From: Macrostomum lignano
Taxonomy: Eukaryota
Reading direction: 5' to 3'
NCBI GenBank assembly: GCA_002269645.1
Contig: NIVC01000634.1
Coordinates: 1 to 64,000 of the forward strand
Length of the DNA: 64,000 nucleotides
Of the stretch, positions 1,291 to 64,000 are shown one piece after another (the stretch's first letter is position 1; every line of letters starts with the position of its first letter). The notes under the pieces are model-generated. The model saw only the letters and a program-made list of their open reading frames with translations, was not told the origin of the DNA and searched no databases. A program made the translations under genes and the position numbers.

Positions 1291-1698
1291 CCTAAGCATG
1301 ATAGATAACGACTTAATAAGATAGAGATATACTAAAAGTAAATTTTCTAATTGAAATTGAAAACAGAATTTGCTACTTTCCAAAATCTAATTTTAGAAAA
1401 AAATTGTATAACCAAGGTTGGTTGTTTACTGTCAAAATTGACTGCTCAAGAAAAACCAGATACATGCATATTACATATATAGCATAATGTATTAATCATG
1501 GCTTTATTACTTGAAATCCAATGGCAATGCTAGAGAATTTCGTAAAAAAATATTCTGTCGAGCAGCAGCAGTTCACTGGCGCAGCAATTGGCCAACAATC
1601 AGCGGTGGCGCTTGCTTATCTGACGGCGCCAACCGTCTCTCCCTCGTCTCTTGGAAAATTAATCCTCTAAGTCGTTTGTCGGGGCGCAGTTCGGTGCG

Positions 1699-4600
1699 AT
1701 GTCAGCGGCGCCACCTCCATCTAGCGGCAGTGGCGGCGCGAAGCCTAAGCGATCGTCAATTGGTGCCGCCGCCTCGCCAGCGCCTGTGGATGCCAAACGG
1801 GCTCGGCTGGCTGCGCCTGTTGCGCCCAGTTTAGTGGAGTTGCGCCGGGCCTACCACGATCACGTAGCCGAGCTCAGCTACCTTCAGGCTGGCAACAATC
1901 TATTAGACTATCTGCTGTGGCGTCAGTCCTGCCCAAAATCTCTCTTAGCCGCTTTGAAAGCCGAAGCGCTCGACGAAGACGATCGAAGATGGATTGGCGA
2001 GATGGAGAAGTCCGGGCGGTGCGCGAATTGTTTCCTCGGTAAAAATTTTTTGCTTCTTTATCGACATGCTATGAGGGGTCTCAATGAGTCAGTCTTTTTA
2101 GGTTTCGGGTTTTTAGAAATTTGATGATAGATTTTTTGAACTGCATTTCCAACAGAAAGCATACCGAAACTGTAAAGAAACACGATGGGAAATTATGTAT
2201 ATAAGTATGCCATCAGCCAGTTTCACGGCAGCTCCTAAAACCCCGGTTCCATTTCACCAGGCCAGCCACGGTGCCGCAGGAATGCGAGCAGGCGGCGACA
2301 ACAGGCAATCCTATTGTGAACTACCTGCAGCTGCCGAGGCGCAGCTCGCCGCCTTCTCAACAGCAGCGTCAGCTGAGGCGAACTTCGTCTCAGCAGTCCA
2401 GCCAGGCCTCTCCGCAGCCGTCTCTGGCGTCCCAGACTTCTTCATCTCCGACAAAACAGGAAAAAGAAGCAGAAATTGTTGACCAGGCGAAGCACGAGGC
2501 TCAGGTGATGCAGAAGGTGGCCGAGCTCAAAGCGGCCGGTCTTTGGTCCAGCAAGCGGCTGCCGAAATGCCTGGAGCCGCCCAGGCCCAAGTCGCACTGG
2601 GACTATTTGCTAGAAGAGATGCAATGGCTGGCCACGGATTTTATGCAAGAGAGAAAGTTTCGTCGCGTCTTTTCTCGCAAGGTAAGCATTAGGTTGAGAT
2701 ACTTTGATAAATATGAACTTTACTGCTTTCATTCTCGTGATTGACAAATCATTCCCAGATGTGCCTGATGGTTCAGCGACATTTCCGCGAAAAAGAGGAC
2801 AGAGAGCGGCGCCAGGAGAAGGAAGAATTTCATAATTTAAAGCGCATCGCCTCTCAGTGCGCCAGGATGGTGCGCGAGTGGTGGCTGGGAATTCAAAAGG
2901 TGAGGCAGCTCTGCGGCTAAAATGGTATACTCATACTCAAGTGAACTCATCGCGAGCTGCCGATTTATTGCGCGAACAGATTATTTCCTTAAAATCTGGA
3001 CCGTTAAGCAGCTCGCTACATTAGCACTTATTCTTTTTCACTGACACAGAAATTCGCTCTACCCGATGCGTCTGTGTTATAAATTAGAATTACATTGCTT
3101 CTATCGGCGCAAACTGTTTTAATAATGCCTATTTTTAACGAGAGAGATTGAATTAATCGCCAAACTTGGCTACCCGCAGTTCGTGGAGTTCAAGCACAGC
3201 AACAGGCTAGAGGAGAAGCGACGAAAAGCTCTCGACCTGCATTTAAACTTCATCGTTGACCAGACTGAAAAGTACTCGGAGTGGCTTGTCGAAGGCCTCA
3301 ACGCCGGTGGCGCCAGCAGTAGTGGAGGCGCCGGGTCCGTCGCCGGCAGAGATGACGAAGAATTCGTGCCGGCCGCATCGGATCTGGACGCCGACATGGA
3401 TGACGAGGAGACCATAGCCAAGGCCGAGGCTGAGGACTTGGCCGATACACAGGATGGCGACGACGAAATTGCCGCCCTGCAACGCGACATGGACCAGCCA
3501 ATGGAAGAGCTTCTGCGCAGCCTGCCGCCTGAGATTCTAGAGAAGCCGGCCAGTCTTCCGGGCTCGGAGGCTGGCACTGATGATGATAAAGACAAAGGCG
3601 ACACCGGCGACGAAGACAGCGAGTTTCGCATGGACTCCGACGACGCCGAGGCCGAGGATGTCGAAGATACAATCGCCGAAGAGGAGGCGGCTGTGGGCGG
3701 CAGCGGCGATGCCGGCGTCGAGGTCGACCAGCTGGCGGAGGAGGCCGAGCTGCCGCTTGAAGAGCTACTGAAACGCTATCGCGGCGCGTTCGAAGGAGGC
3801 CACAGCGAAGCCGACGAGGCGGCGTCTGTGGCAGAAAAAAGCGGCGGCGAAGACGGTACCGCCTCCGGCAAGTCTGGCGACGCCTCGGACAACACAGACG
3901 ACGAAGCCTCTGCAGGCGCCAAATCGGCCATTGCTGAGCTGGCCGAGATGGATGCCACTTCCGATACCGGCGACGCCAATGGCGAGGACGTCGAGGCGCA
4001 AAGGCGATGTCGGGAGAAGCTGGATGAAGGCTATCGGGAGCTGGCGGCTGAGGCGCTGTCCGCGCTGCCGAAGGGATTCACACTGAACTCCACTAAGATT
4101 AGCGTGCCTATTCCGCACCTGCTGCGCGGTGGCAGCCTTCGCGAGTACCAGATTGTTGGCCTCGATTGGCTGGCCACACTCTACGATAAGCGGCTTAATG
4201 GCATTCTTGCTGACGAAATGGGTCTTGGCAAAACCATCCAGACCATCGCCCTGCTGGCGCATCTGGCCTGCGACCGCGGTGTCTGGGGGCCGCATCTCAT
4301 TGTTGTGCCAACGAGCGTCATGCTCAACTGGGAGATGGAGTTCAAGAAGTGGTGCCCCGGCTTTAAGATTCTTACCTATTTCGGCTCTCTAAAAGAGCGC
4401 AAGGAGAAGCGCAAAGGCTGGACAAAGACGAACGCATTCCACGTGTGCATCACCTCTTACAAGTTAGCCATTCAGGATTCCCGCTGCTTCAAGCTCAAGA
4501 AATGGAAGTACCTGATTCTTGACGAGGCGCAGAACATCAAGAACTTCAAGTCGCAGCGCTGGCAGACGCTTCTGACATTCAACAGTCAGAGGCGCCTTCT

Positions 4601-7600
4601 ATTAACTGGAACGCCGTTGCAAAACTCCCTCATGGAGCTGTGGTCGCTAATGCATTTTCTAATGCCTCAAGTCTTTCAGTCTCACAGAGAGTTTCGCGAA
4701 TGGTTTGCCAACCCCCTCACCGGCATGGTGGAGGGCACACAGGAGTACAGCGACCAGCTGGTACGGCGACTTCACAAGGTGAGATAATTGGCTTGCTTGC
4801 ACTTTTTTCTAGCTAAGTATTACTGATCTGAAAACTATATAGGGTTATCATTTTACTTTCAAAACAGGTGTTGAGGCCTTTCCTTCTTCGGCGTTTGAAA
4901 AAGGACGTCGAGAAGCAGATGCCAAAGAAATACGAACACGTCGTCATGTGCCGACTGTCCAAGCGTCAGCGGTACCTCTACGACGACTTCATGTCGCGTG
5001 CGTCAACCAAGGAGACTCTGGCTAGCGGCCATTTCATGAGCGTCATCAATGTGCTAATGCAGCTGCGCAAGGTGTGCAACCACCCCAATCTGTTCGAGGA
5101 GCGGCCCACTGTGTCGCCGCTGCGTGTTGACCCAATTCGCATTGACGTGCCCGGCGATGTTCTCCGACTGCGAGACTACGATCCTATGCGCCAAGTTCTG
5201 CTGGAGACTCTGTGGCCAAACATGTGCGAGATGGAGCGCGACCTGCCCAGCTTCGTTGCCAGCCGGGTGGAACAGCTTCGACCGAAGCGTCCGCTAATTC
5301 AAGAGCTCGCAGACGATGCCGCACAGGATGCCGCAATTGGCAGTTCAAACGGCTCCTTCCCGGAGTCTGTGTTTAATTTTCGCGGCTTACCAGTGTCTCG
5401 CAAACCGTTTATCTCGCGAGCCACCCTCAAGGAGTCTAAGCTGGAATTGGCAAAGACAGCAGCACTGCCACCAGGTTTGTAAAGAAGTCAATTTTGCAAC
5501 AATCCTTATTGGTTTTCTTCCTTTTTACTTAATAAAAATGATCATCATCCACTTTAAATAAAGAATATTTCACAAACAAATATTTATATAGATTAGACAT
5601 TTATTATCGGTGGATAAGAATCCGTACTTTGCAAAAATCGCATATTATGTTTTTATTATAAAACCCGGCCTCCGAGGCTCCGACAGTCTCGATCCCGAAC
5701 AGATTCCTTCCTTAGGGTTGCTTTCATAAGACCGAAATTTCATAAAGCCGAGAGACACCTGCCTACCTACACAAGACCGAAATTTCACAATGCCGAAACC
5801 ACTGCATGGTCCTTCATAATCATAAGACCTAAATTTCACATCGTATAGAAAACTCAATATGCAAACCCTTCACAAGACCGAAACTTCATATGTCTGAACT
5901 TTTACATCATAGAAAAATTAATACAACAAGGACCATGCAGAATTTTCGGCGTTGTGAAATTTCGGTCTTTTGAAGGGCCTTGCATATTGAGTTTTCTACA
6001 GTGTGAAATGAGATGTTTCGGCGTTGTGAAATGTCGGTCTTATGAGGCTCCCCCCTTCCTTAGCCCATGCATTCATTAAGCAAATACACAGTCACGAACC
6101 CCTTTGTCGTGTCTGCCTCTTGTATCTTCTTTGCTTCTTTGCTTTTGACTTGAGGGGTCCCCGCGGCGCATTAAATGACTGTCTCTCCTCCCCACTGAGT
6201 GCACAACTTGTATGTACGCAAAAACACGCTGGGCCGGGGTTTGACTTCAAAAATCGATATTCCTTCTAGAATTTTCTACGCACCACCCACCCTCCCGTAC
6301 CCTATTCCAGCCCTGTGCTACTTGCCTTCTCATTGGCTGACACGCCTCTGTCACGCCCCTCTGGCGTGCACACCGCACAACCCCCCATGGTCCCTAGGTC
6401 TTGCCCTATATGAAATCACCGACTCGAAGCCCCACTGGCCCCTTCCCCTTTGCTTATCACACGAATACAGTGGGATTGTTCCAACTTCCAAATCCAAAGC
6501 ATTTATTTCATGCCGTATAGTTTGACTACTGACTGAAGCAGATTTCAGCGCTGAATAAAGACTTTGTCTTCTCAAGTTTTCTCCTTCTCAAATGAATACC
6601 TGAATAAAAATGGTTAAACGAAATTTCTGTCATCGACATCAATCCATGGCGCCAGTGGTAAGTGAAGTCCAACCACTTTTCGTGTTAAATTCCAATCTAG
6701 AAGCACAATTCGAATCTAGACCGAAATTGAAAGAAATATTGACTGCTACAGTTTACCCAGTATAAATTTTAAGACCTCCGTGCAGTCACACCCTTGTTAC
6801 TGAACAATTAAGTTATTGTTCTCAGTAATCGTTCTGTCGCGATTTGGCCGCACTCTGGTGTTTAGCAGTCAAAGATGATCCGGCTAAAAGTGAGAAACGT
6901 CTCTAGCAGATTTTACGAGTCGTTTTCGAACATTTAGCGACAGTTTTTCACACTAACGTTTTCTATGCTTAACATGACATGATTACTTGTTTCTCTTGGC
7001 TGACTAAGCTATATGCTATGCAGATTCCGAGATTTTATGATATTTTAATAGCATCCAGGAACAAACCATTTGATCTTGTTCTCTACTAAAGGTTTCCTCC
7101 CTCTCTCCTACTTCATTTGAAGGATCTCGGCCCCAGCCTGAGAAGGTTGACACCAGGCATCTATGCAAGAAGCTCGCCAGCAAGTATGCAATTGGTATGT
7201 AGACTTTTTCTTTTTTCTTATCAATTTTATTATAAAGCAAAACTAGAAACTTGGCCGTTTTCATTCGTGTGATTCCGACAATACGCGTATTCTCGGCATC
7301 GAATACGACAAATAGCAGCCAGTTATTTTACTGACTGTCTTTAATTAAACTGGCCTAACAGCAGCTGCTTTCATTATTTACGTGCTGTCGCCATTTTAAC
7401 CCGACTGTGCTGGCGGTGACAGCCCCGAGTAATGACACAATTATTGCAAATCCACCATCAGCAATAAATCTTTCTCATTGCTTTTGCCGCTCTTTCCGTT
7501 CTTCTCAACAGAAGCTCCCGTCGATCCCGACGCCCAGCTGCCAGACGGCATCCGGCAGATTCGGCAGCAGGCGCGCCACGATCGAGTCAGCTTGCTGGAC

Positions 7601-10600
7601 CGACTCAGCGATCGCCGATGCCAGTTCCAGCCGGTGTACGGCTGCGACCTGCTCGCCGCCGTCTCCATTTTCCGGCACCCGACAGAGCCGCACTCGGTGC
7701 TGCCCAGCTGGCGACGCGGCTGCTTGTGGACCAGCAGCACTCAGCGGACTCAGCCTCGTGCGCAGTCCTACTGTCTGATGCGCGGCCACCTCCACTGCCT
7801 TAAATCTCAGCTGAGAAAGTCCGATCCTCGCCTGCTGTTTGCCTCCACCAGCGGCCTGGAATGCCTCGTTAATCGGCCCGAGGATCGGCTGGTTGAGCTT
7901 CGCGATGTTATTGACAGGTGCGATTCTTCTATCCCTATTGTAATGTGAAATCCGAACTTGATTTCATTTTGAAATGATTATAAAATCCTGCAATTCAGAT
8001 ATTTAGCTGATGTCAAACCAAGACGATCTTAGCATGATCCCTGCTCTTGTCCACCTAAGATAGTAGGCCTTTGATTAATCAATTTCTAGTGATTTCTTTC
8101 ACCACTGCCTCATTGCAGATTTTGCTTCGCGGTGCCTCCCGTGCTGGCCGGCGAGCCGTTTCTCTCCTGCCCTTGGCAGCAGCGCCAAGTCGCTGTCGAG
8201 CGCGAATCTGCAATCCGCAGCCAGAGCAGCCGGTGCGACCTGTTGCACCCGATCGCCAGTCGCCAAGCGGTGCAGTTCCCAGACGGCCGGCTGATTCAGT
8301 ACGACTGCGGCAAGCTGCAGAGTCTGGATCTGCTGCTGAAACGACTAAAGCCCAAGGGCCACCGGGTGCTCATTTTCACCCAGATGGCGCGCATGCTGGA
8401 CATCCTAGAGCAGTTCCTGTCGCATCACGGCCACATCTACCTGCGGCTTGACGGCACAACTCGAGTTGAGCAGCGCCAGATTCTCATGGAAAGATTCAAT
8501 GCTGATAGCCGGATTTTTGTGTTCATTCTGAGCACTCGGTCTGGCGGCCTGGGCGTCAACCTCACCGGCGCCGATACTGTGGTGTTCTACGACTCGGACT
8601 GGAACCCCACCATGGATGCGCAGGCTCAGGATCGCTGCCATCGCATCGGCCAGACTAGGGATGTTCACATTTACAGGTGAGCAGGCCTAATGTCCTGTAA
8701 TAATGTAGCCTATTTCATTCATTGCCGTCTCCCGCTTCCGAGACTTCTACCAATTAACTCAGTTGGAATTCATCGGCTGAAAAGTGACGGCTAACATTAC
8801 ATATTAATTGTAGCAGAGTAAATTTTCCTATTCTTGCTCCATTTCTGTAATAATTCCAGGCAAGAATAGGCAGATGGCTTTGCAACAGTTGCTTTAAAAA
8901 CTATTTTAGTGTCAACAGTTCTGTGCTCTGTGTATCTTCTAAGCTAAACATAATAAACATTGCACATTACTATTTTATCCAGGCTGATCAGCGAGAAAAC
9001 AGTCGAAGAGAACATTCTGAAGAAAGCCAACCAGAAACGCTGGCTAAACGATGTCGCCATTGAGGGAGGCAACTTCACCGCCGCTTTCTTTCAACAGAAC
9101 ACCATCAAGGAGCTGTTTTCTGAACCGACTGGCCTGGATGACTTGGTTGCCAAGAAGAAGACGCGCCTGGCTGCTGCTGAGCAGGAGCAGCAGGCGGAAG
9201 CTGAGAGTCGGCCGGGTATCGAAACGGTAATTTATTAAAGTTCATCGCTTGTACTATTTATTAATTCTATTTGTTATGCGTGCATTTAGTTTTTATAAGG
9301 ATTAAAAACAAAACAGGTGAGCTTCCTAATAAAAGGGGCGAATCAAATGATCATTGATCGATAGGAATGAATAAGCTTTCTTGAACCTATAATCAGACTT
9401 GACATTTTAAATCAACTGCGATTTGCTTCTGACCGATCCGCACGAATCCCCGCTTAACCCACAGGCCCTCGAAGAGGTGGAAGACGAATCCGATCGGCAA
9501 GCAGCCGAGAAGGCCAAGAAAGAGACTGTCGAAGAGCTGGCCGAATTTGATGAAGACATTCCCTGGGATGAGAACGAAGCCCTGCTTCGGCAGCGCGAGC
9601 ATCGACTGGAGCGCAGGCTGGCCGCGTTAGAAAGCGAGGTTTGCTTTGCCTTAATGCGATTTTTGTGCTTTTATTCATTTCATTTGCTAAATAATGATAA
9701 ATCCAGGGGAGTTCAGAGTCACGGTTCTGAACCAATAACTCGTGTCTTTGCCGTGCTTAAGAATTCCGAGATTAAACTTCCATTCAGTGTGCGCTTTGAC
9801 CAAATGCTTGCAACTGCTGCTATTGCTTAATGTTCGAGTGTTGGAGGCCGTGACTGAAACAGTAAAATCAATTAGTTCGACAGGGCATTCATGATGAAGC
9901 TTATCGCTTGGCCAGTCTGCAACAAATTGCGCTGAAGTGGTGCTGCAATGCGCGCTGCTTAAAGCGGCGGGACCCCGCATTGATTTTTGGGCAGACTATG
10001 CTATTCAACTAAGCGGCTTATTAGCTGCGGTCTGATCTAGCCCTCTTGTACTGTAGCTTCCGTCTCAGTGTAATTAGAAATATTTTTATATTACTGCATA
10101 TTGCAGTCCTTTTATTATTAAAACTCCCCTCCTTTGCCAATTGCCAGCTGTCTTCTCTGGAGCGCTACGGCTTGAGCTTCATCGAATCCCATCAGGAGCT
10201 GATGATGAACTGGGAGCTTGAGCAGGCCGAGGTCAACATCGAGCAGTCCAAGCGCGAGTGGGAGCTGCAGCAGCTCAAGCAGCTTCGGCAGGAAGAGGAG
10301 CTGCGCGCCGAGCTGGAAGAAGACGACATGTTCATGTGCTACGGGGCCTACGACCCCGCCAGACAGGTACGGGAGCTTGCGCGCCAGATGGAGATCGAAG
10401 ATGCGGATCATGACTTAAGGGTTGGAGGGGAGGAAGCTGCGGTTTCGAACGCGTCGCCGGACCGCGGACGGACAGCGGACCGACTGGTGTCCAGTCTGGG
10501 AATTCGCCAGGTGCAGCTGGCTGACGATTCCACGGGTGCTGGCGTTGGTGCAGATGCGAACTCCACGCTAGCAGCGCGGCGACGAGCGAAAAAGATAAAG

Positions 10601-11260
10601 CGCCAACGGCGGGTGGCTGCCGAGACTGCGGCGCAGCAGAACCAATTGGCTTCTCCACTTCAGCAGGAGCAGCAGCGCCAGCAACTGTTCACTGAGGAGA
10701 GTCTGGTGATTGTCGATAATGAGACCAGCGAATCTGGGCCTCCAGTCCAGCTGCCAACGCTGCTCATGCGACAGCAGAAGCGCAAGGCTGATCCAACTGA
10801 GCGAAGCTTTCGGCTTTTCCCGCCAGCTGCTGCGCCGCCCATGACTCACGCCCCGCCGACAATCTCGCAGCCCCTACATTCATCGCATACCACAGCAACA
10901 CCAGCTTCATCTGCCGGCGTCACATTGCTGCAACCCCAATCTTCTGCTCGGCCGGTGACCCTCGTAACTCGCCAGATTGTTATTCCAAATGGCCAGGTCA
11001 TCCACCAGCAGTTTATCCAGCCGCGGTACCTGCAGCAGCAGTCTCACCAGGGCCAGGCTATACGACTGGTACCGGTTTCCCAGTCGCCATCTCAAACTCA
11101 AAATCTGGTGTTAATGCCGCAGTCTAAGCAGCAACAGCCGCAGCAGCAGCTAATCACACTGCATCGCTCTGTGCCGCAGCAAACTGTCCGCCTTGTCCCA
11201 GCTGCCCCCTCATCAGCCGCAGCTTCTCCCGGCTCTTTGGGATTTCAGAATCCGCGTTAA
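1699..11260 (+). CDS. dom: Domino/SRCAP/EP400-family SWR1-type chromatin-remodelling ATPase, short (DOM-B/SRCAP-like) isoform, ~1860 aa
   Basis: Phase-consistent GT-AG exons: 1699-2018, 2261-2681, 2759-2899, 3180-4778, 4868-5474, 7512-7917, 8119-8676, 8983-9226, 9465-9638, 10148-11260 (5583 nt). Motifs: N-terminal HVAELSYLQAGNNLLDYLLW block, HSA (KSHWDYLLEEMQWLATDF), Walker A GILADEMGLGKT, DEAQ box, split ATPase insertion, and HelicC (QAQDRCHRIGQTRDVHIYRL). The last exon reads through into a Q/P-rich tail ending at TAA 11258-11260; AATAAA is at 11775-11780. Confidence 0.95.
5720..6047. mobile_element. Foldback/MITE-like inverted-repeat element in domino intron 5
   Basis: The motif AAGACCGAAATTTCA occurs several times on + (about 5728, 5773, 5826, 5875) and as its reverse complement (about 5955-5969, 6028-6042). 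gaaaactcaatatgcaaacccttc (5849) is mirrored by gaagggccttgcatattgagttttc (5972). Confidence 0.65.
6045..6660 (+). mobile_element. Possible LTR remnant with PBS-like sequence
   Basis: In order: ATTGG box, TATA-like TATATGAA (6407), AATAAA (6554, 6603), then ...CA followed immediately by TGGCGCCAG (6647-6655). No second LTR and no gag/pol ORF were found. Confidence 0.2.
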
Positions 11261-12742
11261 TGTTTTATTTGGGCTGGGAATCCTTGGATAAATTAATTCA
11301 CTTAGTTGTATTGCATAATAAGTTTTATCACAGCGCTAATTTTGTTATTGCTTTATGGCATTAATTATCCAGAGTATCATATATACCAAAATATTAATAG
11401 CTTAGTACTGCTGATAATGGATCAAAAATTCAAAATTGCACCATAATTGTAGCGCTTTAGTGAAACAAAGGCCCGGCCAGCAAACTCGCAAACTAGGCAT
11501 GTGTTTATTTATAAATCATGCAACTTTGTAAACAAAACAGATTTCCCTGCTAAATTTACACGGAGCTGTCTGGCATTTCCTTAGTGAGGCGGCTAATTAA
11601 TTTACTGCAAGGACAACAAATGTGTGCAATGCGTGCACGGTTTTCATTCCTGATGTAGGCTAAGATTGCGTGTCCCCATTGCACAGTTTCTATTGCTTAA
11701 AAGTGATCAATCTGTCAATTCTCTGTGGACTTGTACATGCTTTCAATTTAACTGTTTGCCGTTGGAAAGTGCAAAATAAAAATGCGTATTGCATAAGTTA
11801 TTTTTCATGAAAAACCAGCCTGTGGCGGTGCAGTGGCCCGCTATGAACCGCGAGAAAATCAAAATGGCTTATTGGTTTATTCGTTTCAATCGTCTTTCTC
11901 CTACACAAGAAAGTAAAAGTGATTAATTAATGCCCGTGTGGATCGAAATTGTCGAGGGGCAATTATAATTTCATCGAAAAGCTATTCAAATTAAGCGGCC
12001 ACTTTCAGTTCCCGTTTTCCGAGCGCACAGACCGTAATAATACCTTGGTTATAATAGCGAGCCGCACGTCTTTCAAAATACGTCTAGAACCCAATATTAA
12101 AAAATACTAAATTCCCCATTCGCTTAGTTAATGCCTACTCGAAGTACTAAAGAAATGACTGTATTTGAAAGACGTTTGAATCGTTATAACCAATACAAAA
12201 ATGGACTTCGTAGCTAGCAAAATAATAGTTCGGCCAAATGATTTTGTGTTTGGCCAACGCTATTTTGCTTGCTGCTGTCTGCCAGAATTCTCGCTGCGCT
12301 TCGTGGCTGACACTGAATTGGTTCGCTGCAACAAGAAATGTCGACAATTGAAGTAGCGTGTGTACATGTAGCTCAAAATGATAATTAGCCTTGCACGGAA
12401 ATGAAACTTGGACTGGAAAGTATACTCCGAGCGTGTGAATTAATTTGTAGTCCATGAGCACAAAGTTTTAGAATTAAAAACGTTGGCATTAGGTGGTGAT
12501 GCATGAAAATATGCGCATCTTAGCTTGTAGGGCTGTATTTTTGTTTAGATAAAATTTTATTTGCAGCGACCCGCGCCAAAGGCGGTTGGTAATTTTAGAA
12601 ATTACAAAGTACATTCCGGCGGCAGAGCAGCTGCACCTATGAGTATATACTGAGTACAGATGTATTTCGCAGTTGTACTAATTAATACAGTGGAAAGTCT
12701 TCCTAAAGAATTCATTCCCTTCCAACTTTTAATTGCTTCTAG

Positions 12743-12778
12743 GTCTTCATCTTTAAGGATACTGGCGAGCTGCTTCCG
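12743..12778 (+). CDS. dom: 36-nt microexon (VFIFKDTGELLP) of the long Domino isoform
   Basis: Strong acceptor (ttttaattgcttctAG) and perfect donor (GTAAGT), phase 0-0. It joins ...YDPARQ (donor 10367) to IWHPLEL (acceptor 16022), restoring the spacing of the EP400/DOM-A block that precedes the WxP..D.Y.D motif. Confidence 0.75.
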
Positions 12779-13551
12779 GTAAGTGATAATTTTGTTTAAT
12801 TAAGCTCTTGTTTTGTGTTTCCATTTGTCCAATGTGTGTCCCCTGTCCGACTTAGAGTTCGCTATTTCCAAGTTCATTGCAGCCAAACGACTTAATTTAA
12901 TTTTAAGTCGAATGATTTAATTTCAACATGGCTCAAAACTAGAGGCCAAATGCCAAATGGCACCATATTTAAAAAAATAAAAAATCTTTTGATAAGCTCG
13001 TGCTACACCTCCGTCTCAGTGGTTTTTACTCTGTTTCTGAATTGCGATTTTGCGTTAGAATAAAGCGCCGATCACTATAACTAGCTTAGAAGTGTCTTTT
13101 ACATTCTAATTCTAATGCACTTAGCTATCTCCAAGATAGAAATCATCTTAGCTCAACTTACGAAGTGGCTCCCAGTCGCAGCGCATAGACGATTGGCTTG
13201 GTGTTGGGAATTCAATAATAAATATAAAACAGCGGCCGAGCCTTGGCGAGAGAGAATCTGCACTCTGCCTTGCTCATCCCCACTGGGACTTGCCAGCCAT
13301 AGACATCTCTTTGTACAGTTGGCTCGAAAGGCAACTCGGGCCCATTCCGCTGCTCAGCCCAGAGGGGAAGGCTTTTTCGGCTTACGGCTTTGCATTAGAG
13401 CCGCTCGCATTTTGACCTTAACAAAAGACAACCCGAGGCCCAAGGTGCAGTTAGAGGCAACGAGAAGCGTCCACGAGCCACATCTAGCTAAGCTTGCGTC
13501 GGATTTGGTCAACCACAGCTGCAGCACCTATATACCTAAGCAGACTGAACT

Positions 13552-15055
13552 ATGCGCGAGATTGTGCACATGCAGGCTGGCCAGTGTGGCAATCAAATTG
13601 GAGCAAAGGTAAGCCTTATTTATTCTCCATTATTTTAACACCATGGTCGCGTTTTAGTGAGATCGGACTCCCAATTTCCCTTACTGTGTCCTCCTTGGTC
13701 TTTTTAGTTTTGGGAGGTGATCTCAGATGAGCATGGCATCGACCCCACTGGCACCTACCATGGCGATTCGGACCTGCAACTCGAGCGAATATCGGTTTAT
13801 TACAACGAAGCTACCGGCGGCAAATACGTGCCGAGAGCTGTGCTCATCGACCTGGAGCCCGGCACCATGGAGAGCGTTCGGGCCAGCTCCTTTGGCATGC
13901 TGTTCCAGCCCGACAATCTGGTCTTTGGCAAGAGCGGCGCCGGCAACAACTGGGCCAAGGGCTACTACACAGAGGGCGCCGAGATCATCGACAAAGTCAT
14001 GGATGTTATCCGCAAAGAGTGCGAAGGCTGCGACTGCCTGCAGGGCTTCCAGCTGACCCACTCGCTTGGCGGCGGCACCGGCAGCGGCATGGGATCTCTG
14101 CTGCTGAGCAAAATTCGCGAGGAATATCCAGACAGAATAATCACCTCCTTCTCTGTGGTTCCTTCGCCAAAGGTAAGCTGAGCTGTTTTTTCTAAACCAA
14201 GTTTGTGCTTTGCCTCTAACCACGCCACCGAATCTATTCCAGGTGTCGGACACGGTGGTTGAGCCCTACAACTGCATGCTGTCTCTGCACCAGCTGGTTG
14301 AGAACACCGACGAAACCTTCTGCATCGACAACGAGGCCCTGTATTACATCAGCTTCCACACCTTGAAGCTGGCCACCCCCAGCTACAGCGATCTGAACCA
14401 TCTGGTCAGCGCGGCCATGTCCGGCGTCACCACCTGTGTCCGCTTTCCCGGCCAGCTGAATGCTGACCTGCGCAAGCTGGCAGTGAACATGGTGCCGTTT
14501 CCTCGCCTGCACTTCTTCATGCCCGGCTTCGCCCCGCTGACCGCTCGCGGCAGCAGTTCCTACAGGCAGGTGAATGTCTCCGAGCTCACCCTGCAGATGT
14601 TCGACGCCAAGAACATGATGGCCGCCTGCGACCCCAAGCACGGCCGCTACCTCACTGTGGCTGCCATCTTCCGCGGCCGAATGTCCACCAAAGAGGTCGA
14701 CGAGCAGATGCTCAACCTGCAGAACAAGAACAGCTCGTACTTTGTTGAATGGATACCCAACAATGTGAAGACCGCAGTGTGCGACATCCCGCCCAGAGGA
14801 CTCAAGATGTCGGTGACCTTCATCGGCAACTCCACCTCAATCCAGGAGCTGTTCAAGCGAGTCTCCGAGCAGTTCAGCGCCATGTTTAAGCGGAAAGCAT
14901 TCTTGCACTGGTACACCAACGAAGGCATGGACGATCACGAGTTCATGGAGGCCGAGTCCAACGTCAACGATCTGGTGTCCGAGCTGCAGCAGTACCAGGA
15001 CGCCACCGCCGACGACGAGGGCGAGTACGAAGAAGAAGAAGAGGAGTTGGAATGA
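13552..15055 (+). CDS. tubb: Beta-tubulin, divergent isotype, 444 aa, nested in a domino intron
   Basis: Exons 13552-13608, 13708-14172, 14243-15055 (1335 nt). Contains the MREI start, GGGTGSG signature, NNWAKG, CDIPPRG and an acidic C-terminal tail [12 protein letters not shown]. Confidence 0.98.
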
Positions 15056-16021
15056 CACTGACGGCCACCGAGCCCCCCTGCCCCCTACTGCAGTCCCCTG
15101 TGCCTCGCTGCACTTTTTTTTGCGTTCTCCTACTCGTAACCTCTTTACCAAAGCGCATTGCTGGCCTGGATCAGTGCCCAACGGCCAAGCAGTCTTCACA
15201 CCGACAATCGGAGATACCGCACTGCCCGAACCTCCCCCACCTCTGATGCGCAGCATATCGCTTCAATCTGTCCCTCTCGCATTGTTTATCGCGTCACAAT
15301 GTCCTGGCAACCACAATTCCCTATTTAGTGTCATTGCGCTATTTATTTACCTTGGCATAACCCGTACAGTTACCTGCTTGTACGGACGGATTTTGTAGGG
15401 CTCAAATTGGTTTTAAACACGCAAAACACACGTCACATTTCTGTACACCAGCGCAGCCGACAGCGAGCGGTTGAACACAGGTGGACAACTGCACTCGGCA
15501 TCCACTTAGCATTTTAGTTTACCTTGACTCATTATTTATTACTGTTGTACAGTCGTACTCGAATACATATAACGCTTGATTTTAGTGTCAGCTATGCACT
15601 GCATATTTCTGTCTTTGACTTCTGTTTTGTCTTTATCGATGCAACGGGAAAAACAGCATGAAAAATTCTCACAAACCCGGGTCTGCTAAATCAGCTAGAA
15701 AAGAATATGTTAAAGCTCATCACGAATGATAAAGCTTGGAAAAATTGCTGCTCCCAGCTTCTTCCTCTTCGGCGAGAATTTTTCAAACAGTTACGCTTGA
15801 TCTCCAGTTGTGCTGGTTGCAAAGAAAACGCGGTTTTTTCATTCCTCTTCCACCGTTGCAGTTTCGCAAGAGTTAGTGGTTATTTCTTTTCTTGTGAACT
15901 GCTCCATCTGGTGTCTGTTTTACTCCCAGGCTCCTCAGATGCGGCTTGTGCATGTGGGGGGGGGGCTCACCCGCGATTCTTACTCTGTTTATTCCGCCCA
16001 TTGCTAACCGTCTCCGAGCAG

Positions 16022-18999
16022 ATCTGGCACCCGCTCGAGCTGAAGGAGAATGACCACTACGTGGACCCCGTCGCCAGCCAGCTGTACTGCTTGGACCAGC
16101 CGTTGCGGGACGATGAAATGCCCCCGCTGTGGCGCCGCGCGAGCGAAGCGGGACGGCCGCTGGCGGCGGCTTCCGACTGCAGGAGCCACCGCCCGGTTGG
16201 CGACGGCGCGGCGGCGTGACCAAAGCCTCTGTGCGCGGCGCTGGCGGGAGTCGGTCCGCTCGAGCCGCCGCTGCTGCTGCCGCCGCAGCCAGCGGATCAG
16301 GCGGCGTCCTGCAACCGCTGCGCCTGAAAGACGAACTTCCGCCAACCCTGGCAGCCGCCGCGGAATCCGCCGGCTCCAGCAGTCACTACAGGCACCCTAG
16401 CGGCAAACTGCAGATTCCCAAATCTCTGTTCCACCGGGATAGCCTGTCCCTGTCCTACGCCAAGCCGAAGCGGCCGCTGGTGCAGCGCCCAGGCGTTGGC
16501 GGCGTTGTCGGCCCAGGCGGCGTTGGTGGCCTGGGCGTCGGTCCGGGGCATCAGCAGATGCTGGCCAGGCCCGGGTACAGCAACTATGACAACCCGAGCG
16601 GCACCGACTTCGATCTGCAGCCAAAGTGGAGCGCTCACGAGCAGCTGGGCATCATCCAGAGCATCGAGCGCTTCCAGGAGATGTACCTGGAGACGGCCCT
16701 GTCCTATGAGCCGCGGTTCACCACCCAGATTCCAAACTGGGATTTGGCCGAGTACTACGTCAACAATTTCGTTCGATCCCGCTGCTACCGCGGCAAGTTT
16801 CACATTCACGCCCACATCGACCAACTGGCCAGCAAGGTCATGGACGATGGCACGGCGGCTGCCGCAGCTGCCGCCGCCGCTTCCGGATCGGGCAACGATG
16901 CCGCCTCATCGCAGCAGCTCCCAGCCTCTGCCGACGGTTCAACCAGCTCTTCTTCCACAGCTGCCGGAGGCGCGCAGGCCGCGGCGGCCGCTGCTGTGGC
17001 CGCAGCAAAGAAGGCCGCCCGCTGCCGCCTGAAGCGGGGAATCCTGCGGTCCCGGCTGAGCGCAGGCGAATCGGCGACCCAGCTGAACTACTCAGTGGAC
17101 GCCAAGGGCCAGGCCATGCGTAGCCTCCTACGCTGCGGCCTGAGCACCGGCTCCGGTGGCGGCGGCGGCGGTCACAGCCGCAAAGGCGGCCCCGCCATCG
17201 GACTGAACCGGCCGCGACCGACTTCCACGGGCTCCTCCGCCTCATCCGGCGTGACGCTATTCAAGAACACCCAGCACCTGCAGCTGCTGCAGGAAGAGGG
17301 CATCAAGCTGGACACCATCGTGAGTCCCGCGCACATCATCCGCCTGGCTGAGGAGCGGCGCAAAACCCAGCCGGTCTCTACTGCCATCACCGCTGACGTT
17401 GGCGAGCAACAGCAGCAGCAGCCACAGCAGCAGCAGCAGCAGCAGCATTCTCTGCATCAACAGCAGCTGCAGAAACTGCGAATGTCCAATCAGGGCGGCC
17501 TGACGTCAATCGGGCCGGGAGGCTCGCAGTCGCATGTGAGTTGGGGATCATTATAAGAGTGCAGATAATCACGCCAGCTCTTAGGCTGCTAAACAATCTA
17601 TAGTTAAAGCATTGGGGGTTTATTTAGCTGGCATTTGCCTCCAGCTGCAGGTGTCCACCTCGGCCGGGGCGGCCGCCAAGTCCAGCATCCTGGTGCCCGG
17701 CACCGCCAGCTCCGTCCTCGGCTTCCAGCGCAGCGGCGGCGGGCCTTTCCGGGCCGCTAGTGCGGCCGCTGCTGCCGCCGCTGCAGCAGCCTCAACGACA
17801 TCCGGCGGGAAGCCGCCGACGGCTCCGGCCAGGATTCTCACCTCTGGCTTCGGCGGCCCCTCGAGCTCGTCCAGCAGCGGCGCCAGCAGCGGCAGCACGC
17901 TGCTCCGCCCGCCACCGCAGCCAATGCCGCTGCCGCAGTCCCAGGCAACTCTGCCCGTGTCGCTGCAGGCGCCTCAGCAGCCGATTTCAATCACTTCAAC
18001 GCAGCACCAGCCTGCTGGCCTGGCCGCGGCCACCGGCATCGGCCTTGGCGGGCTGCGGCGTCCCGGCGGCGCCTACGCATTTCCAGCCTCGGCTGGCGGA
18101 GTCGGCCGGCTGAACCCGAACCAGCCTGCCGCCTTCGTGCGCACCCTGGGTGAGTTCAGGGGACCGTCGGGATTTTAAATTGCTGCATCTTAGCTGTGGG
18201 CTGTCGGTAGCTCCAACCCGTTGAAAAACTAAAAAGTGGTTGCTAACAACTCTCAAGTGACTCAAGCGACTCTGTTGTGACTCTGGTGACTTTTTAACGA
18301 CTCAAACGCGTCTAGTGCGACGGAGAGGCGGCTGTTGCGTCACAAGCGCATCACGTGAATTTTAGGATCGTAAAAGAGTCCTCAGTGACTCAACAGCTAC
18401 TCCAGCACGCCTCAGATACGACGTTTTACCGTCGCGTCAGAGTCACTTGCGTCGCCCCATTGTCTTTCATTATCATGTCACAATCGACCCCATCCCGCTC
18501 CCGGCCAGGTCCGCGGTCCAGCATTCTCGGAGCTGCCGGCGGAGCGACCTCGGTCCCGACCACCCTGGTCACCACCTTGCCGCGGGCCCGCCTGCAGGGC
18601 CCTTCGGCAGCCGCCGCCGCAGGGTCAGCGCAGCAGCAGCCGTCGGGTTCCGCCGGTGTCGCTCCCGCCAGCCTGTACAGCGGCGGCGGTGGCGGCGGCG
18701 GCCGTCACGTGATCCTGCAGGGCACCACCACCGTCACGGTTCGCCAGATTCCCGATTTGAGGTCGGCCGACTCGGCCAGCCAGCAGCCAATCATCATCTC
18801 GGCCGCCAAGCCGACCCCGGCCGCCAGCATCAGCCTCATCCCGCCCGGTTCCGCCGCCGCTCACGCCGCCGCTGCCGCCGCCTCAGCCGCCTCCTCAGCC
18901 GCCAGCGTCTATCCGTCATTCACTGTCTCGGCCAGCGCGCATTCCTCGGTGGCGACTCTGCCGCCAGTGGATTTGGACAGCATTGACGATGGCAACTAG
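16022..18999 (+). CDS. dom: Alternative 3' exons of domino encoding a p400/DOM-A-like C-terminus (SANT domain plus Q/A-rich tail); long isoform ~2410 aa
   Basis: Exons 16022-17535, 17651 (or 17645)-18149 and 18509-18999. IWHP..DHYVDP..LY...PPLW resembles the EP400 LWTPP..DIYLD block. PKWSAHEQLGIIQSIERF...PNWDLAEYYVN...YRG resembles the EP400 SANT domain (W...ED..LLQ...PNWDLVSDVVN...YRS). One base is needed at 16130-16132 to keep the frame. Confidence 0.85.
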
Positions 19000-19006
19000 C
19001 GAAAAG

Positions 19007-19170
19007 GAATGCCGTCCCTGTCTCTTCCCCTGACCTTCGATGGGATGCCGTCCCTGTCTCTTCCCCTGACCTTCGATGGGATGCCGTCCCTGTCTCTTCC
19101 CCTGACCTTCGATGGGATGCCGCCACCACCTCTCCCCTGACCTTCGATGGCATGCCGCCACCACCTCTCC
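19007..19170. repeat. 36-bp minisatellite, ~4.5 copies, in the domino long-isoform 3' UTR
   Basis: Unit gatgccgtccctgtctcttcccctgaccttcgatgg starts 8 nt after the stop codon. Confidence 0.9.
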
Positions 19171-19886
19171 TGCCGCACAGAGATTGGCTGGTTTCTAAAA
19201 CCCGGACCTTTGTACAAAATCAAAGCCAATCAATGAGTGGCATTGTGTATTTACAATGTGCTGGTGGGAGTTTTGTTCATATTTAATACAGCTTTGCATT
19301 GCGTTGTGTTCGTCTGTTGACGCGTTTTGTACTCACTTGGCTTCGACATTAATCCTAAGTTGCTGCGAGTATTTAAGGTAAATAACAAATTCATACTTAC
19401 TTCACTGCTCGCTGCATAAGTTTCACTTGCTGTTGTTGAATTTGGCACCCGCCTGTAATATTGACTGCGTCCAACATTTTCCATCGCTGTTCCTCTCGAA
19501 TGTTTGGCTCATTAGGCTCGAAATTGCTCTTTAATTGAATGTTATTCTTGCGTCTCCCTGTGCTTGTGTCCGTTGCTTATTGGAATGGTTAATCATTAAA
19601 TTGAATTGATTATGCTAATTAGCCTTTTGCGGCTGTTAATCTTATTTGCAGGCCAATAAATAGTGTGTTTAATTTTTTTAATCGGCAGCTCAATTAAAAT
19701 AGACTTGACTTTGTTTTGTTTTGCCTTTTGCCTGTGGCTGCTACCCATTTATTCTCCCTGCATCTCACGCTCTCATCCCGATACAGGGAACGAGAGAAGC
19801 AATTAATAACATTGTAAAAGCTCGATCCACAGCGGCTGCAAACTCAAATAAACAATTATTCGATAGCAGATACATCTCGACATGGT

Positions 19887-21104: not shown

Positions 21105-43461
<22,357 letters not shown>

Positions 43462-46423: not shown

Positions 46424-51779
<5,356 letters not shown>

Positions 51780-53634: not shown

Positions 53635-56298
53635 GCCTCTCCCCGGTTATGATTGCCGACGACTCCGAGCGGGCGCTGACCTCCGGCCTGCTCAGCGCGC
53701 TGGGAACCGAGGCGCGCCAGATCCCGCTGCGCCCGACCACGGCCGGCCTCACCCGTCGGGCCCGCCTGGCCAAGCCGACGGCGCCTCTGCCGCTTGAGGA
53801 AGACGGCGGCTCCGGCGGGGACGGCGGCCTGCAGCTGCCGCTGATCGACGACGCTCGCCGACAGAAGCGTCGGAAGCGGCCACCAGCTGGCGGCTCCAGT
53901 CCGGACCGGCTGGAAGCACTCGGCCCCCGGCGCCTCGGCCGAACAAGGCGAGTCGGCGACTCGACCTGCCACGGCCGCCGCATCCTGGCGTCGACGCCGC
54001 TCGGAGACGTCGCCGAAGCCGATGGCTGCCGATGTTGCCGATTGCGTCAACACGCGCTACGCGGTGCTGAACGGCCGCACCCGGACGGAGGCCAGCGATT
54101 TCGAGGCCTTCAGGCGGCGCTACGGCCGCGGCAGCGAATGGGGTCGCGTGGCGTGGGCGGCCCGCTGCATGGAGCAGTTCCTCACCGCCTACTCCGTGCC
54201 GATCGCCTTCGTCAACGGCGAGAAGCTGGCGGCCCTGGCTGAGCAGCTCGACTTGTCCGGCCGGCGGCCGACCGGAGCTCAGCTTCTCGACTGTCTCATC
54301 AACCGGTCGGACGTGGCGCGGCTGGTGTCGCAGCCCGGCCGGCGGTTCTCCGGCCCGGACGGCCGGTTCCGAGCCTGCGCGCTCATCCAGGCCCGCTGGC
54401 GCGGCTTCGCGCAGCGCCGCCGCTACCTGGAGCTGCGGCGCCGGCGCCAGGCGGCCGTTGTCATCGCCACGGCCTGGCTGCTGCAACTGCGCCGGAGGGT
54501 CGCCCGGGTGCGTCTCAGCGAAGCCCGGTCGCAGCACCTAGACGGCTACAGGCGCAGGCTGCGGCTGCTCGCCAAGAACTGGGCGGACTGGCAGCGCCAG
54601 CGCCGCGTCCTGGTGCACATCCCGTCGGCTGGGCTCTCGGAGCGGACGCGGAGTCGTCTCGGCGATGACGGCATCGACCAGCTGCAGGCCGGGCAGATGG
54701 CGCGGTTGTGCGACATCCGCGACCCAAATGTTGACGTCGTGCTGGTCTGCCCGCGGCCGGTGAGCCCGGAGGTGGCGCAGTACTTCAGCCGGCTGGCGGG
54801 CCTTCAGCCTGCCATCCGGTCGGGCCGCGCCGAGGACCAGGCGGACGCCAGCAGGAGGTTTCGCCTGGTGGTGCCGGAGGCGGTCGGTCAGTTCCGCGGG
54901 CTGCCGCTGTGCCTGTCCACCCTGCTCAACTACTCGCCGAAGGCGCTCCGCCAGATTCGCGAGGTGGTGGTGGGCCGGCGGGCCTTCATCGTGCCCGGGC
55001 TGGCCTGCGCCGACGACCTCGCCGTGGCCGACCAGCTGGACCTGCCGATCCTCTGCCCGGAGCCCGGCGCCCTACGGCTGTACAGCGGCAGCGCGGGAGT
55101 CGGAGAAATTCTTCGAGCTGCCGGGCTGCCGATGCCGCCGGGCGAAGCCGGGCTGGCGGCGTCGGTCGAATGTCTGGCTGACAGGCTGGCGGCGCTGGTC
55201 ACCTCCAACCTGGACGTCGGCCGGTGGCAGGTGACGCTGGAGGATTCGGTCGACGAAGCGGAGGACGCGGATCGAAGCCGGCGGGTGTTCGACACGGAGC
55301 GACTTCGCTGTCGCCAGTGGGCGCTGGAGGAGCGGCAGCGGCTTGGAGAGGCGTGGTCAACGTCTTGGAGTCAGGAGGGCGTCAAGCTGAAGGTGCTGGA
55401 GGAGCTTCACCAGTCCGACTCGGCAGGGCTGAGCGGCCAGTGCGGCCGGGAGTTCCTGGCCGAGTTCGCCGCTCGCGGAGGCTGCATTCGAGCGTGCGCG
55501 GACGGCAGGGCGGCTCGGGTCAGCGCCGACCTCTGCGTTGAGCCGAGCGGAGCTGTGCGGCTCGTCAGCTGCGCGGACGGCGGCGGCAGCGGCGGTCCGA
55601 GGTTCGTACCCCAGTCAGCGCTGCCACCGAGCCGCCTCTCCGAGCTCTGTGGCCGGCTCGGCTCGGCCTGCTTCGAACGACGACTCATCGGGCACGTCAG
55701 CGTCGAATTCGACGTGTTCCAGGAGGGCGGCAGCTCCGCGCCTGCCGTGCTGACAGCCGGGCTGCGGTTCGGCTACTCGGACACGGCCGCGATGGCGCAG
55801 CTGCTGCAGTTCGCCACCAACTCCAGCCTCGACCCGGTTGGCCACGAGCTCACGATGAGGCGGCGGCTTCCCGGCGGCGGCGGCGGAGGCAGCAGCAGCG
55901 GAGTTCGGCACCGACCGCGCACCGCCGCTGCTGCAGTCGGCTCCACCGGCAGTGGTCGTCAGCGTCGATTTGCCGCTCTGTCGGCCGGCCTGCGGCACTC
56001 CGGCCTGGCCGCCGTGGACTTCGGCGTCTTCTTCCAGCTGTGCAAAGCCCGTGGCGTCGGGTTCGACGTCGCGGACCTCACCGGCACCGTCTTCTGCCTG
56101 GCCGAATCGGCTCGGCGCGACCGCCTGTGCGTCCTGACGGTGTCGAACGGGTCGCATCGGGCGCGGGCGGAGTTCGCGCGGGTGCTGGCCGCCATCAACG
56201 AGGAGCTGGGCGCGGCGGAGTTGTCGAACTTCGCGGACTACCTGCCGCCGGAGGGCGAGAGAGTCGAGCGGCTGAAGGCGCGGGGCTCGGAGGCCTGA
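53635..56298 (+). CDS. iqch: IQCH-like (IQ motif-containing H) protein; 5' end uncertain, one frame break
   Basis: ORF 54022-56298 has the IQ motif LIQARWRGFAQRR and IQCH-typical blocks (VIATAWLL, RVLVHIPS, RLCDIRDPNVDVV, YSPKALRQI, DDLAVADQLDLPIL, FQLCKARGVGFD). IQCH-like upstream sequence (LSPVMIADDSERALTSGLL) is in another frame from 53635. Candidate small upstream exons: 52994-53103 (AELGLR) and 53205-53246. Confidence 0.85.
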
Positions 56299-56935
56299 CG
56301 GAGAAAATCTGCTCAGGAAAGCAATGTATAAGAGAGATGAAACAGCGGCCAAAACACACGCCGGCTTCGGCTGACCTTCAGATATCTGGCAAACTATACA
56401 GCTAAACACTGAAGAGCTGCTCTCCCACTAATGCGTTTTGAAACTGCATATAAACTGTGCTTTTAAGTTTCCATAATTTTCAAGTGCGTGCCAGACACTC
56501 TTACTGCAAGTAGCCAATTTGGAGTTGTATGGAGTTGAAGTACTACTCACAGTACGAACTTTGATTAGCGATGTACCTCGCTGAGTGTGATTGAAATGTT
56601 ATTTATGCTTTGCATTTTAGCTCTGGTAGGGTAGCAGTGAAGGCATGTCAGTCTGTACAGATAAATAAACTACTATGAGTAGTGCATATGTGTTGCTCAG
56701 TACAGCACTGTGCTTGAACTGCACTTCAGCAAGGAATTGAATGTTTATTTGTGAATTTATCTAGAAAATCTATTTATTGCATATTTTTATCCCATTGCGA
56801 TTTCTCAGAATCCCACAACGCCGCGGGGCTTCCTTCTGTTCGATGATGAGCACCAGATGCCGCCGGGGTCGCGTGCTTCCCAGGTACTCAGCTCAAGCGG
56901 CTGCCACCTGCCCTTGGGAAAATCCCCGACCCCAA

Positions 56936-57935: not shown

Positions 57936-58190
57936 GTACGCCCACCTTGTAGCTCTTGTGACCGCCGGGACATTTTGTGGCTTCTGACAGCCGTTATAAT
58001 TCTCTTGACACTGAAATAACGTTAATTTAAATCAAGTAACTATAAAAGGTGAAAGATTTTCAGTAATTGTCCAGCAAAAGAAGAGGACATGATTGATATC
58101 AGAGTCAGAATCCAGCTCAGATAAAGCAGAGCCATAGGTGTCAGTCAGCAACACTTTCATTCGCCGGGCTGCTCAACTGCAGCTCAGGTT

Positions 58191-63800: not shown

Positions 63801-64000
63801 CGGCGAGCAGCAGCACCCAGCAGACGGTGTCAAAAAATCGCCTTCCACCGCGGGGGCCGGAGCGGTGGCGCGCCAGGAATGCTTCTTGTACCGATGGGCG
63901 CTGCATCTGTACGACTTTTACCATATCCCCGCAGTGAAGTTCCGCTACCACGCTACGTCGCACGTAATTATGGTGCTGCTCATGTCATACATCCTGCTCT
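60848..64000 (+). CDS. Ankyrin-repeat TRPM-like cation channel (5' part; continues beyond the window)
   Basis: Exon 60848-61331 (phase-1 donor A|GTAAGT) and exon 62177->64000 (open frame with no stop to the window end). About 6-7 ankyrin repeats (DGKVPLHHA, NNTPLHRA, EGKTALHVA), followed by TRPM-like LVWNRIEVLIEN..LEALY, HPMHTLVIWSILAGR, SCMDLAA...CQIALEKKWYG and YDFYHIPAVKF leading into the start of S1. Confidence 0.85.

Follow-up and report, generated by a model that had tools for sequence, protein, structure and literature searches.

A beta-tubulin gene nested on the same strand in a predicted intron of a domino/p400-type remodeller gene of the flatworm Macrostomum lignano

In a 64,000-nucleotide (nt) stretch of the Macrostomum lignano genome (positions 1 to 64,000 of the forward strand of contig NIVC01000634.1, assembly GCA_002269645.1; hereafter, the window), a complete beta-tubulin gene lies within an intron of a chromatin remodeller gene of the domino/SRCAP/p400 type. 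Intronic nested genes are common in animals, and at the level of sequence the present case is confirmed as a real, ordinary, and newly recognised example of this known arrangement. The natural explanation of the locus as a whole is a remodeller gene with two alternative endings that hosts an intact tubulin gene as an independent transcription unit; we consider this explanation probable, with appreciable room for doubt. It is carried by the integrity of the tubulin gene and the selective constraint on it, the identities of both genes, the colinearity of the host with human EP400, and the equal layout of two genomic copies of the locus.

The nested gene consists of three exons on the same strand as the host.

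13552-13608, + strand: beta-tubulin exon 1, codons 1-19, starting with MREI
13708-14172, + strand: beta-tubulin exon 2, codons 20-174, with GGGTGSG
14243-15055, + strand: beta-tubulin exon 3, codons 175-444 and the stop, with the acidic tail

Joined, the exons give an open reading frame (ORF) of 1335 nt, or 444 amino acids (aa), free of internal stops; both introns are GT-AG and all boundaries are in phase 0. Pfam assigns the product to Tubulin (PF00091, E 1.6e-63) and Tubulin_C (PF03953, E 3.8e-43), and the hallmarks of beta-tubulin are intact in the translation: the MREI start, the GGGTGSG loop, the acidic tail, and a near-full length (about 445 aa expected). The protein is exactly PAA70872.1 (BOX15_Mlig025496g1, Mlig025496.g1), listed for M. 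lignano as a "hypothetical protein". A preliminary description of this DNA had proposed a complete three-exon tubulin at 13552-15055 in the orientation of domino, and on the evidence of the ORF, the Pfam domains, and this identity the proposal stands.

In a protein search, the nearest relatives of the nested tubulin are four M. lignano beta-tubulins with 93-97% identity; all other matches are at about 86% or less. Identity to named beta-tubulins is 81-85%, and to canonical animal beta-tubulins about 83%, compared with 87-99% among the latter. The protein carries 17 replacements at sites invariant across 16 canonical sequences, nearly all of them common to the M. lignano paralogs. Apparently, the nested gene is a member of a divergent, Macrostomum-specific beta-tubulin group. 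The paralogs Mlig024742 and Mlig011676 have 94-97% protein identity to it and an equal length and tail; they differ in being intergenic, at unrelated loci where Mlig024742 (L001 and L002) adjoins a HIT-family gene and Mlig011676 (L003 and L004) adjoins an arrestin gene. The coding region is the only part that the window shares with these four loci.

Between the nested copy and the paralogs at other loci, the synonymous divergence (dS) is 0.7-0.9 and the ratio of non-synonymous to synonymous divergence (dN/dS) is 0.028-0.055, which marks the nested tubulin as an old duplicate under strong purifying selection. The intron after codon 19 is common to the nested copy and the paralogs, and the second intron (after codon 174) is present in the nested copy and Mlig024742. 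Because both introns are retained, the nested gene arose by DNA-based duplication, and retroposition is ruled out as its origin. The second intron has been lost in Mlig011676 (tubulins at 10001-11429 of L003 and L004), an example of intron loss in a young gene family. Direct or inverted repeats flanking the tubulin, looked for as a trace of transposon insertion, were not found; an Rfam search over 9-20 kb yielded no family, and a literature search on three gene identifiers gave no match.

The host gene begins upstream with a part that would be common to both of its proposed products.

1663-10366, + strand: shared 5' part of the domino/SRCAP/p400-type host, from Pfam domains and tblastn exon mapping
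2436-2705, + strand: HSA domain (PF07529, Pfam E 1.4e-11), N-terminal to the ATPase
About 3126-4784 and 4865-5308, + strand: SNF2 N-lobe (SNF2-rel_dom, Pfam E 2.5e-64)
8132-8677, + strand: Helicase_C (Pfam E 9.3e-26)
8975-9136, 9438-9638, and 10148-10366, + strand: further shared host exons, found by tblastn with SRCAP/domino fragments

The ATPase is split: SNF2-rel_dom stops near 5100 and is followed by a long insertion and then by Helicase_C. The best protein matches are named SRCAP, domino, or p400, and both SRCAP (residues 2242-2361) and EP400 align to the peptide encoded by 9438-10366. By these features the host is a remodeller of the SWR1/INO80 type (SRCAP/EP400/Domino), with a predicted + strand span of about 1.7-19 kb.

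Downstream of position 10366, the two proposed paths diverge. The long, p400-like path consists of the following elements.

12743-12778, + strand: microexon VFIFKDTGELLP of the putative long isoform, 36 nt, phase 0, with splice sites TTCTAG/G and CCG/GTAAGT
12779-16021, + strand: host intron of 3243 nt with the whole tubulin gene; donor CCG/GTAAGT, acceptor GAGCAG/A, phase-0 flanks
16022-17535, + strand: putative long-isoform exon with an IWHPLE...YVD motif, a SANT-like segment (16624-16794), the C-terminal motif TLFKNTQHLQLLQEEGIKLDTIVSPAHIIRLAEERR, and poly-Q
17585-18999, + strand: tentative 3' exons of the long isoform, stop at 18997-18999; weakly supported, splice sites approximate

The exon ending at 10366, the microexon, and the exon starting at 16022 are in frame when joined. 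In a PDB search, the joined peptide is colinear with residues 2109-2290 of human EP400 through both junctions (E 4.6e-7), whereas human SRCAP (2242-2361) aligns only with the sequence common to both paths, upstream of the branch at 10366. The 10366/12743 junction is ungapped relative to EP400 (..YGAYDPARQ/VFIFKD.. versus ..REDAYSMEYVYED..). The contribution of the microexon was assessed by local alignment of the junction region to the EP400 segment as printed by the 2109-2290 match. The score is 64, compared with 26.7 +/- 5.1 for shuffled sequences, none of which reached 64 in 5000 trials; it drops to 44 without the microexon and to 23, the background level, with the read-through peptide in its place. 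When the microexon residues were shuffled in place, 64 was reached in 7 of 5000 cases. A control PDB search without the microexon was uninformative, as the SRCAP match was lost too, and it was replaced by the local alignments and shuffles.

Farther downstream, a three-sequence profile of the segment 16624-16794 had the SANT region of EP400 (2365-2421) as its four best PDB matches (E 0.0035-0.012), again colinear with the long-isoform exons; the segment is also homologous to a Dicrocoelium protein. The C-terminal exon matches the C-terminal part of an HSA- and SNF2-containing protein of Opisthorchis viverrini (E 3e-7 and 3e-6), and in this 3365-aa fluke protein the C-terminal motifs, HSA, and SNF2 stand in one polypeptide. 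A Q-rich run, QQQQQPQQQQQQQ, is located near 17400-17450. The tentative 3' exons were delineated from high GC content at third codon positions in two long ORFs (17585-18175 and 18316-18996), together with the GTGAGT donor at 17536 and a 6-nt indel, in frame, relative to the second genomic copy described below. The similarity of the flatworm C-terminus to human EP400 is low, with E between 1e-7 and 1e-2. Searches with phmmer against PDB using the short junction peptide and the whole SANT ORF gave no useful match, whereas the longer spliced query and the three-sequence profile succeeded. A homology search with the spliced C-terminal model gave no match at E 0.001 among proteins of up to about 1000 aa; probably, low-complexity words swamped this search. 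The EP400 colinearity, the phase of the junctions, the conservation of the microexon, and the layout of the second genomic copy support the position that had been proposed for the tubulin, with the microexon on one side of it and the exon for the SANT-like segment on the other.

The short path requires no splicing at the branch point.

10367-11260, + strand: read-through, putative short (SRCAP/DOM-B-like) C-terminus of 297 open codons, stop at 11258-11260

The read-through frame past 10367 contains no stops, compared with 9 and 8 in the other two frames, and only one of 20,000 shuffles stays open. GC content by codon position is coding-like (0.71/0.49/0.59), the tail is Q-rich, and an AATAAA follows at 11775. 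The short-isoform peptide found no relative in PDB and, as given above, aligns to EP400 at background level. The donor at 10367 is weak, and weak donors are typical of regulated sites. These data and the spliced p400-like path suggest that a short SRCAP/DOM-B-like and a long p400/DOM-A-like isoform may be produced from one gene. The preliminary description had called the tubulin-bearing intron isoform-specific; its anatomy is as described, and the intron would be exclusive to the long isoform if the read-through ORF to 11258 is a real isoform.

In Drosophila, the DOM-A (SANT, poly-Q) and DOM-B endings come from the one domino gene (Scacchetti et al. 2020, PMC7239659), and this splice-variant solution is perhaps widespread within arthropods (PMC7239659). 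Like domino, the flatworm gene is one gene of the SWR1/p400 type that encodes HSA and a split ATPase, and it is predicted to have a common N-terminal part followed by two C-termini, one with SANT-like and Q-rich sequence and the other shorter and unstructured. The difference is that the flatworm isoforms are predicted from sequence. We know of no tubulin nested in the fly gene. Compared with human, where EP400 and SRCAP are two genes, there is apparently one flatworm gene with two endings. This is a hint that an isoform split of the DOM-A/DOM-B type may also exist outside arthropods.

The same anatomy could be produced by two adjacent genes. Here, the ATPase gene would always end at 11258, and the microexon and SANT exons would form a separate EAF1-like gene with its own promoter or a spliced leader and with the tubulin in its first intron. 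The weak donor at 10367, the clearly coding read-through ORF, and the fact that public models never join the two parts are all as expected from such a pair. Moreover, the last three letters of the M. lignano spliced leader are ATG (quoted in PMC8629364), and with a phase-0 microexon the leader would supply an in-frame start. Three observations speak for a single gene: (i) the 10366 and 12743 boundaries are in phase, and the EP400 alignment runs ungapped across them; (ii) the microexon has a TAG acceptor, unlike the spliced-leader acceptor motif, which has CAG; and (iii) in flukes and humans the parts form one polypeptide. We therefore regard a pair of genes as unlikely.

The locus is present in a second copy on contig NIVC01001201.1 (L005), which carries PAA70872.1 and is 98.1% identical to the window over 15.7 kb, with an equal layout; a second copy is in keeping with the hidden polyploidy of this species (PMC10468722). 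Over this length, 139 substitutions and 65 indels separate the two copies, and in the tubulin coding region there are four synonymous and no non-synonymous differences. Because the tubulin occupies the equivalent intron in L005, the layout of the window is not a misjoin, which the preliminary description had named as one circumstance that would overturn its proposal. That a misjoin or a collapsed duplicate placed the tubulin in the domino locus is extremely improbable: the two copies were assembled independently, and no repeat flanks the tubulin. The points in favour of such an artefact are general ones, namely the many single-base homopolymer errors in the assembly and the nature of the M. 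lignano genome, which is hidden polyploid (PMC10468722) and repeat-rich.

The differences between the two copies cluster in 11.6-13.2 kb, at 35-40 substitutions per kb and with many indels. Inside this most diverged block, the microexon with its splice sites (12694-12814) forms a conserved island with only two differences, of which the exonic one is synonymous. Indels in the downstream exons are of 9 and 6 nt, multiples of three, whereas those in introns mostly are not.

The regions flanking the tubulin coding sequence bear on its independence from the host.

13116-13551, + strand: probable tubulin promoter and 5' untranslated region (UTR), a 436-nt ATG-free stretch with TATAAA at 13223; function predicted
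15056-16021, + strand: tubulin 3' flank and rest of the host intron, with only variants of the poly(A) signal, AATACA at 15562 and GATAAA at 15728

The 436-nt ATG-free stretch was matched in 32 of 20,000 shuffles (P about 0.002). The two genomic copies are nearly identical from about 13140, and divergence falls from 13-25 to 0-1 differing columns per 100 nt at about 13200. Together, the ATG desert, the TATAAA, and the conservation suggest that the tubulin is transcribed from its own promoter, with a 5' UTR of about 300 nt. The region also contains one match to the spliced-leader acceptor motif YTNCAG, a CTGCAG located 27 nt before the ATG (13519-13524); in the window, the motif has a background frequency of 3.5 per kb.

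At the other end, the preliminary description had credited the tubulin with a poly(A) site that the long isoform must traverse. No canonical signal marks such a site: from 13223 to 19594 (6.4 kb), the + strand contains neither AATAAA nor ATTAAA. In the intergenic paralogs (L001-L004) AATAAA is found 219 or 430 nt past the stop, whereas in the nested copy there is none in 966 nt. By an estimate from base composition, chance alone would supply about 0.6 hexamers in 966 nt, so the absence of a canonical signal is not significant alone; it is suggestive of a weak tubulin 3' signal being tolerated within a host intron. On the other side of the gene, between the microexon and the tubulin, the + strand carries a cluster of AATAAA at 12976, 13059, and 13217.

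Several observations weigh against the picture of a two-ended host with an independently transcribed guest. Every host splice and isoform in it is a model built from ORFs and homology. The donor at 10367 (CAG/GTACGG, phase 0) departs from the M. lignano motif GT[G/A]AG (PMC8629364). Pfam finds no SANT/Myb domain in the segment 16624-16794 even at E 1, and the AlphaFold (AF2) model of this segment has three helices at low confidence (predicted local distance difference test score, pLDDT, 50); hence our label "SANT-like". The canonical poly(A) signal missing from 6.4 kb leaves the tubulin 3' end unexplained. Mosaic haplotype identity, and not constraint, may account for the low divergence past 13200, because the two copies also agree fully in introns at 5480-7783.

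The remaining points of this kind concern reading frames and public gene models. In the window, the frame of the exon starting at 16022 is broken by a 1-nt deletion at 16120 (C5, run 16121-16125, compared with C6 in L005). In L005, the same exon is a single ORF through the SANT-like segment to the GTGAGT donor at 17536. A short GT-AG intron that would reconcile the frames at 16117-16217 was considered; none of the 101 candidates had good signals, and L005 shows a C-run indel instead. The NCBI model of the host, a 1332-aa remodeller, ends at window position 8531, which is 20 nt past a 1-nt deletion in L005, and the public annotation neither joins the host exons nor contains anything downstream of the tubulin. 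L005 lacks single bases in homopolymers at window positions 8511, 8996, and 9519, in the helicase and the following host exons, and the public remodeller model is truncated because of these losses. All single-base differences between the copies are in homopolymer runs, in the window at 16120 and in L005 at the equivalents of 8511, 8996, 9519, and 18603. Those that break the remodeller frames are probably long-read assembly errors.

With a two-ended host and an independent guest, expression of the locus would proceed as follows. Past 10366, read-through of the weak donor would add the 297-codon Q-rich tail and yield the short isoform. Alternatively, splicing to the microexon and then across the 3.2-kb intron would add the p400-specific region, the SANT-like segment, and poly-Q, yielding the long isoform. 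The tubulin would fire from its own promoter, with the ATG-free 5' UTR of about 300 nt upstream of 13552. The long-isoform polymerase would cross the tubulin, and the spliceosome would discard it along with the intron. Any interaction between host and guest would be incidental interference, not a designed switch.

A designed switch is what the preliminary description had envisaged: firing of a cell-type-specific tubulin promoter, or processing of the tubulin 3' end, would truncate the host transcript, leaving such cells with the SRCAP-like isoform only. The geometry permits this, as host and guest share a strand and the guest is confined to the long-isoform intron. Nested guests can cause intron retention, exonisation, and cryptic polyadenylation in the host upstream of the guest (PMC3192792), and a cluster of three AATAAA is present between the microexon and the tubulin. 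A divergent tubulin paralog would also often have specialised expression. No sequence feature specifically favours this regulatory hypothesis. Past the tubulin, the lack of a canonical poly(A) signal makes the guest no obvious host terminator, and at the O. viverrini locus there is no tubulin, which would make any coupling recent and specific to the lineage. Whether nested genes are functionally significant has itself been questioned by another study, as mentioned in a passage of PMC3192792. We consider the switch very unlikely.

A broader version is a mechanical two-way link between tubulin output and the choice of host isoform, with a shift to an SRCAP-only state. In the forward direction, the long-isoform polymerase would cross and occlude the tubulin promoter. 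In the reverse direction, the tubulin would truncate the long isoform at the AATAAA cluster (12976-13217) or at a weak site past 15055. Such a link is equally doubtful. A further consequence of the geometry is that the boundaries 10366/12743, 12778/16022, 13608/13708, and 14172/14243 are all in phase 0, so that any cross-splice between host and guest would be in frame. Hypothetical chimeras of this kind are domino-tubulin (microexon to tubulin exon 2 or 3) and tubulin-SANT (the first or second tubulin exon to the SANT exon).

The setting is a flatworm and not Drosophila, and the use of spliced leaders and operons in M. lignano (PMC8629364) weakens the premises of the switch and opens a different kind of coupling. 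Here, the tubulin would have no promoter of its own and would be freed from the host pre-mRNA by spliced-leader trans-splicing and 3' cleavage, as in an operon; each long pre-mRNA would then yield either tubulin mRNA or p400-like mRNA. About 30% of M. lignano genes are trans-spliced and about 15% are in operons (PMC8629364), and multi-gene precursors make up almost 7% of its assembled transcripts (PMC5730564). The CTGCAG at 13519-13524 fits the reported acceptor motif [T/C]TNCAG (PMC8629364), and there are no GT[A/G]AG donors between the microexon donor and the tubulin ATG. Against an operon-like origin of the tubulin mRNA, one copy of the motif near the ATG is unremarkable at its frequency in the window, and the 436-nt ATG-free stretch with TATAAA at 13223 fits the 5' UTR of a gene with its own promoter better than an outron. 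Among M. lignano genes, an excess of spliced-leader trans-splicing is reported for evolutionarily conserved genes and stem-cell genes (PMC8629364); the nested tubulin is a lineage-specific paralog. We regard this scenario as unlikely, and the tubulin with its own promoter remains the preferred reading.

With regard to orientation, the preliminary description had stressed that most nested genes are antisense to their hosts. The statement itself agrees with human data, in which about 63% of intronic nested genes are antisense, leaving over a third in the same orientation as the host (PMC3192792); with so many same-strand cases, the orientation observed here is not exceptional. The M. lignano locus resembles the human same-strand examples in that a complete guest with exons of its own lies in one intron and interference with the host is possible. 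It differs from them in that (i) the guest is a multi-exon paralog from a housekeeping family, in a genome with spliced-leader trans-splicing, and (ii) the host intron is apparently isoform-specific.

The proposed comparison of gene order in related species was carried out for the orthologous locus of O. viverrini, a 48-kb gene with no tubulin. As the fluke orthologue lacks the tubulin, the nesting is lineage-specific. The fluke gene model (L006, KL596621.1:2156374-2208473; 3365 aa, 48 kb) also has a weak RVT_1 match, which suggests that a transposon fragment was fused into the prediction.

Downstream of the host gene, the window contains other coding regions on the + strand. A large polycystin-1/PKDREJ-like gene occupies 28878-41213; its successive ORFs encode the Pfam domains PKD, REJ, GPS, PLAT, Polycystin_dom, and PKD_channel. 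The ORF 53845-56295 encodes an IQCH-like ATP-grasp domain (E 3.9e-41), and the ORF 62086-63999, which runs off the window end, encodes ankyrin repeats and a TRPM2-like domain. The stretch 19009-59800 is unusually rich in minisatellite and microsatellite arrays, which produce long spurious ORFs in several frames. Examples are located at 22977-24501, 34594-35206, 46917-47556, and 56935-57938, and the units include a 30-nt repeat (51 copies), GTCT (152 copies), TCTG (159 copies), a 21-nt repeat (48 copies), and about 20 more.

As matters stand, the locus is one more nested gene, and the practical gain is in annotation: a corrected model of M. lignano domino, for which public models miss both the whole p400-like C-terminal half and the nesting of Mlig025496.g1. 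It also provides a compact locus for the study of same-strand interference between host and guest, in an animal capable of transgenesis and in a genome that also trans-splices. If the two endings are confirmed, one flatworm gene would supply both the SWR1-like and the NuA4/p400-like scaffolds by alternative splicing. The isoform solution, so far described in Drosophila and suggested for other arthropods (PMC7239659), would then predate the split between arthropods and flatworms.

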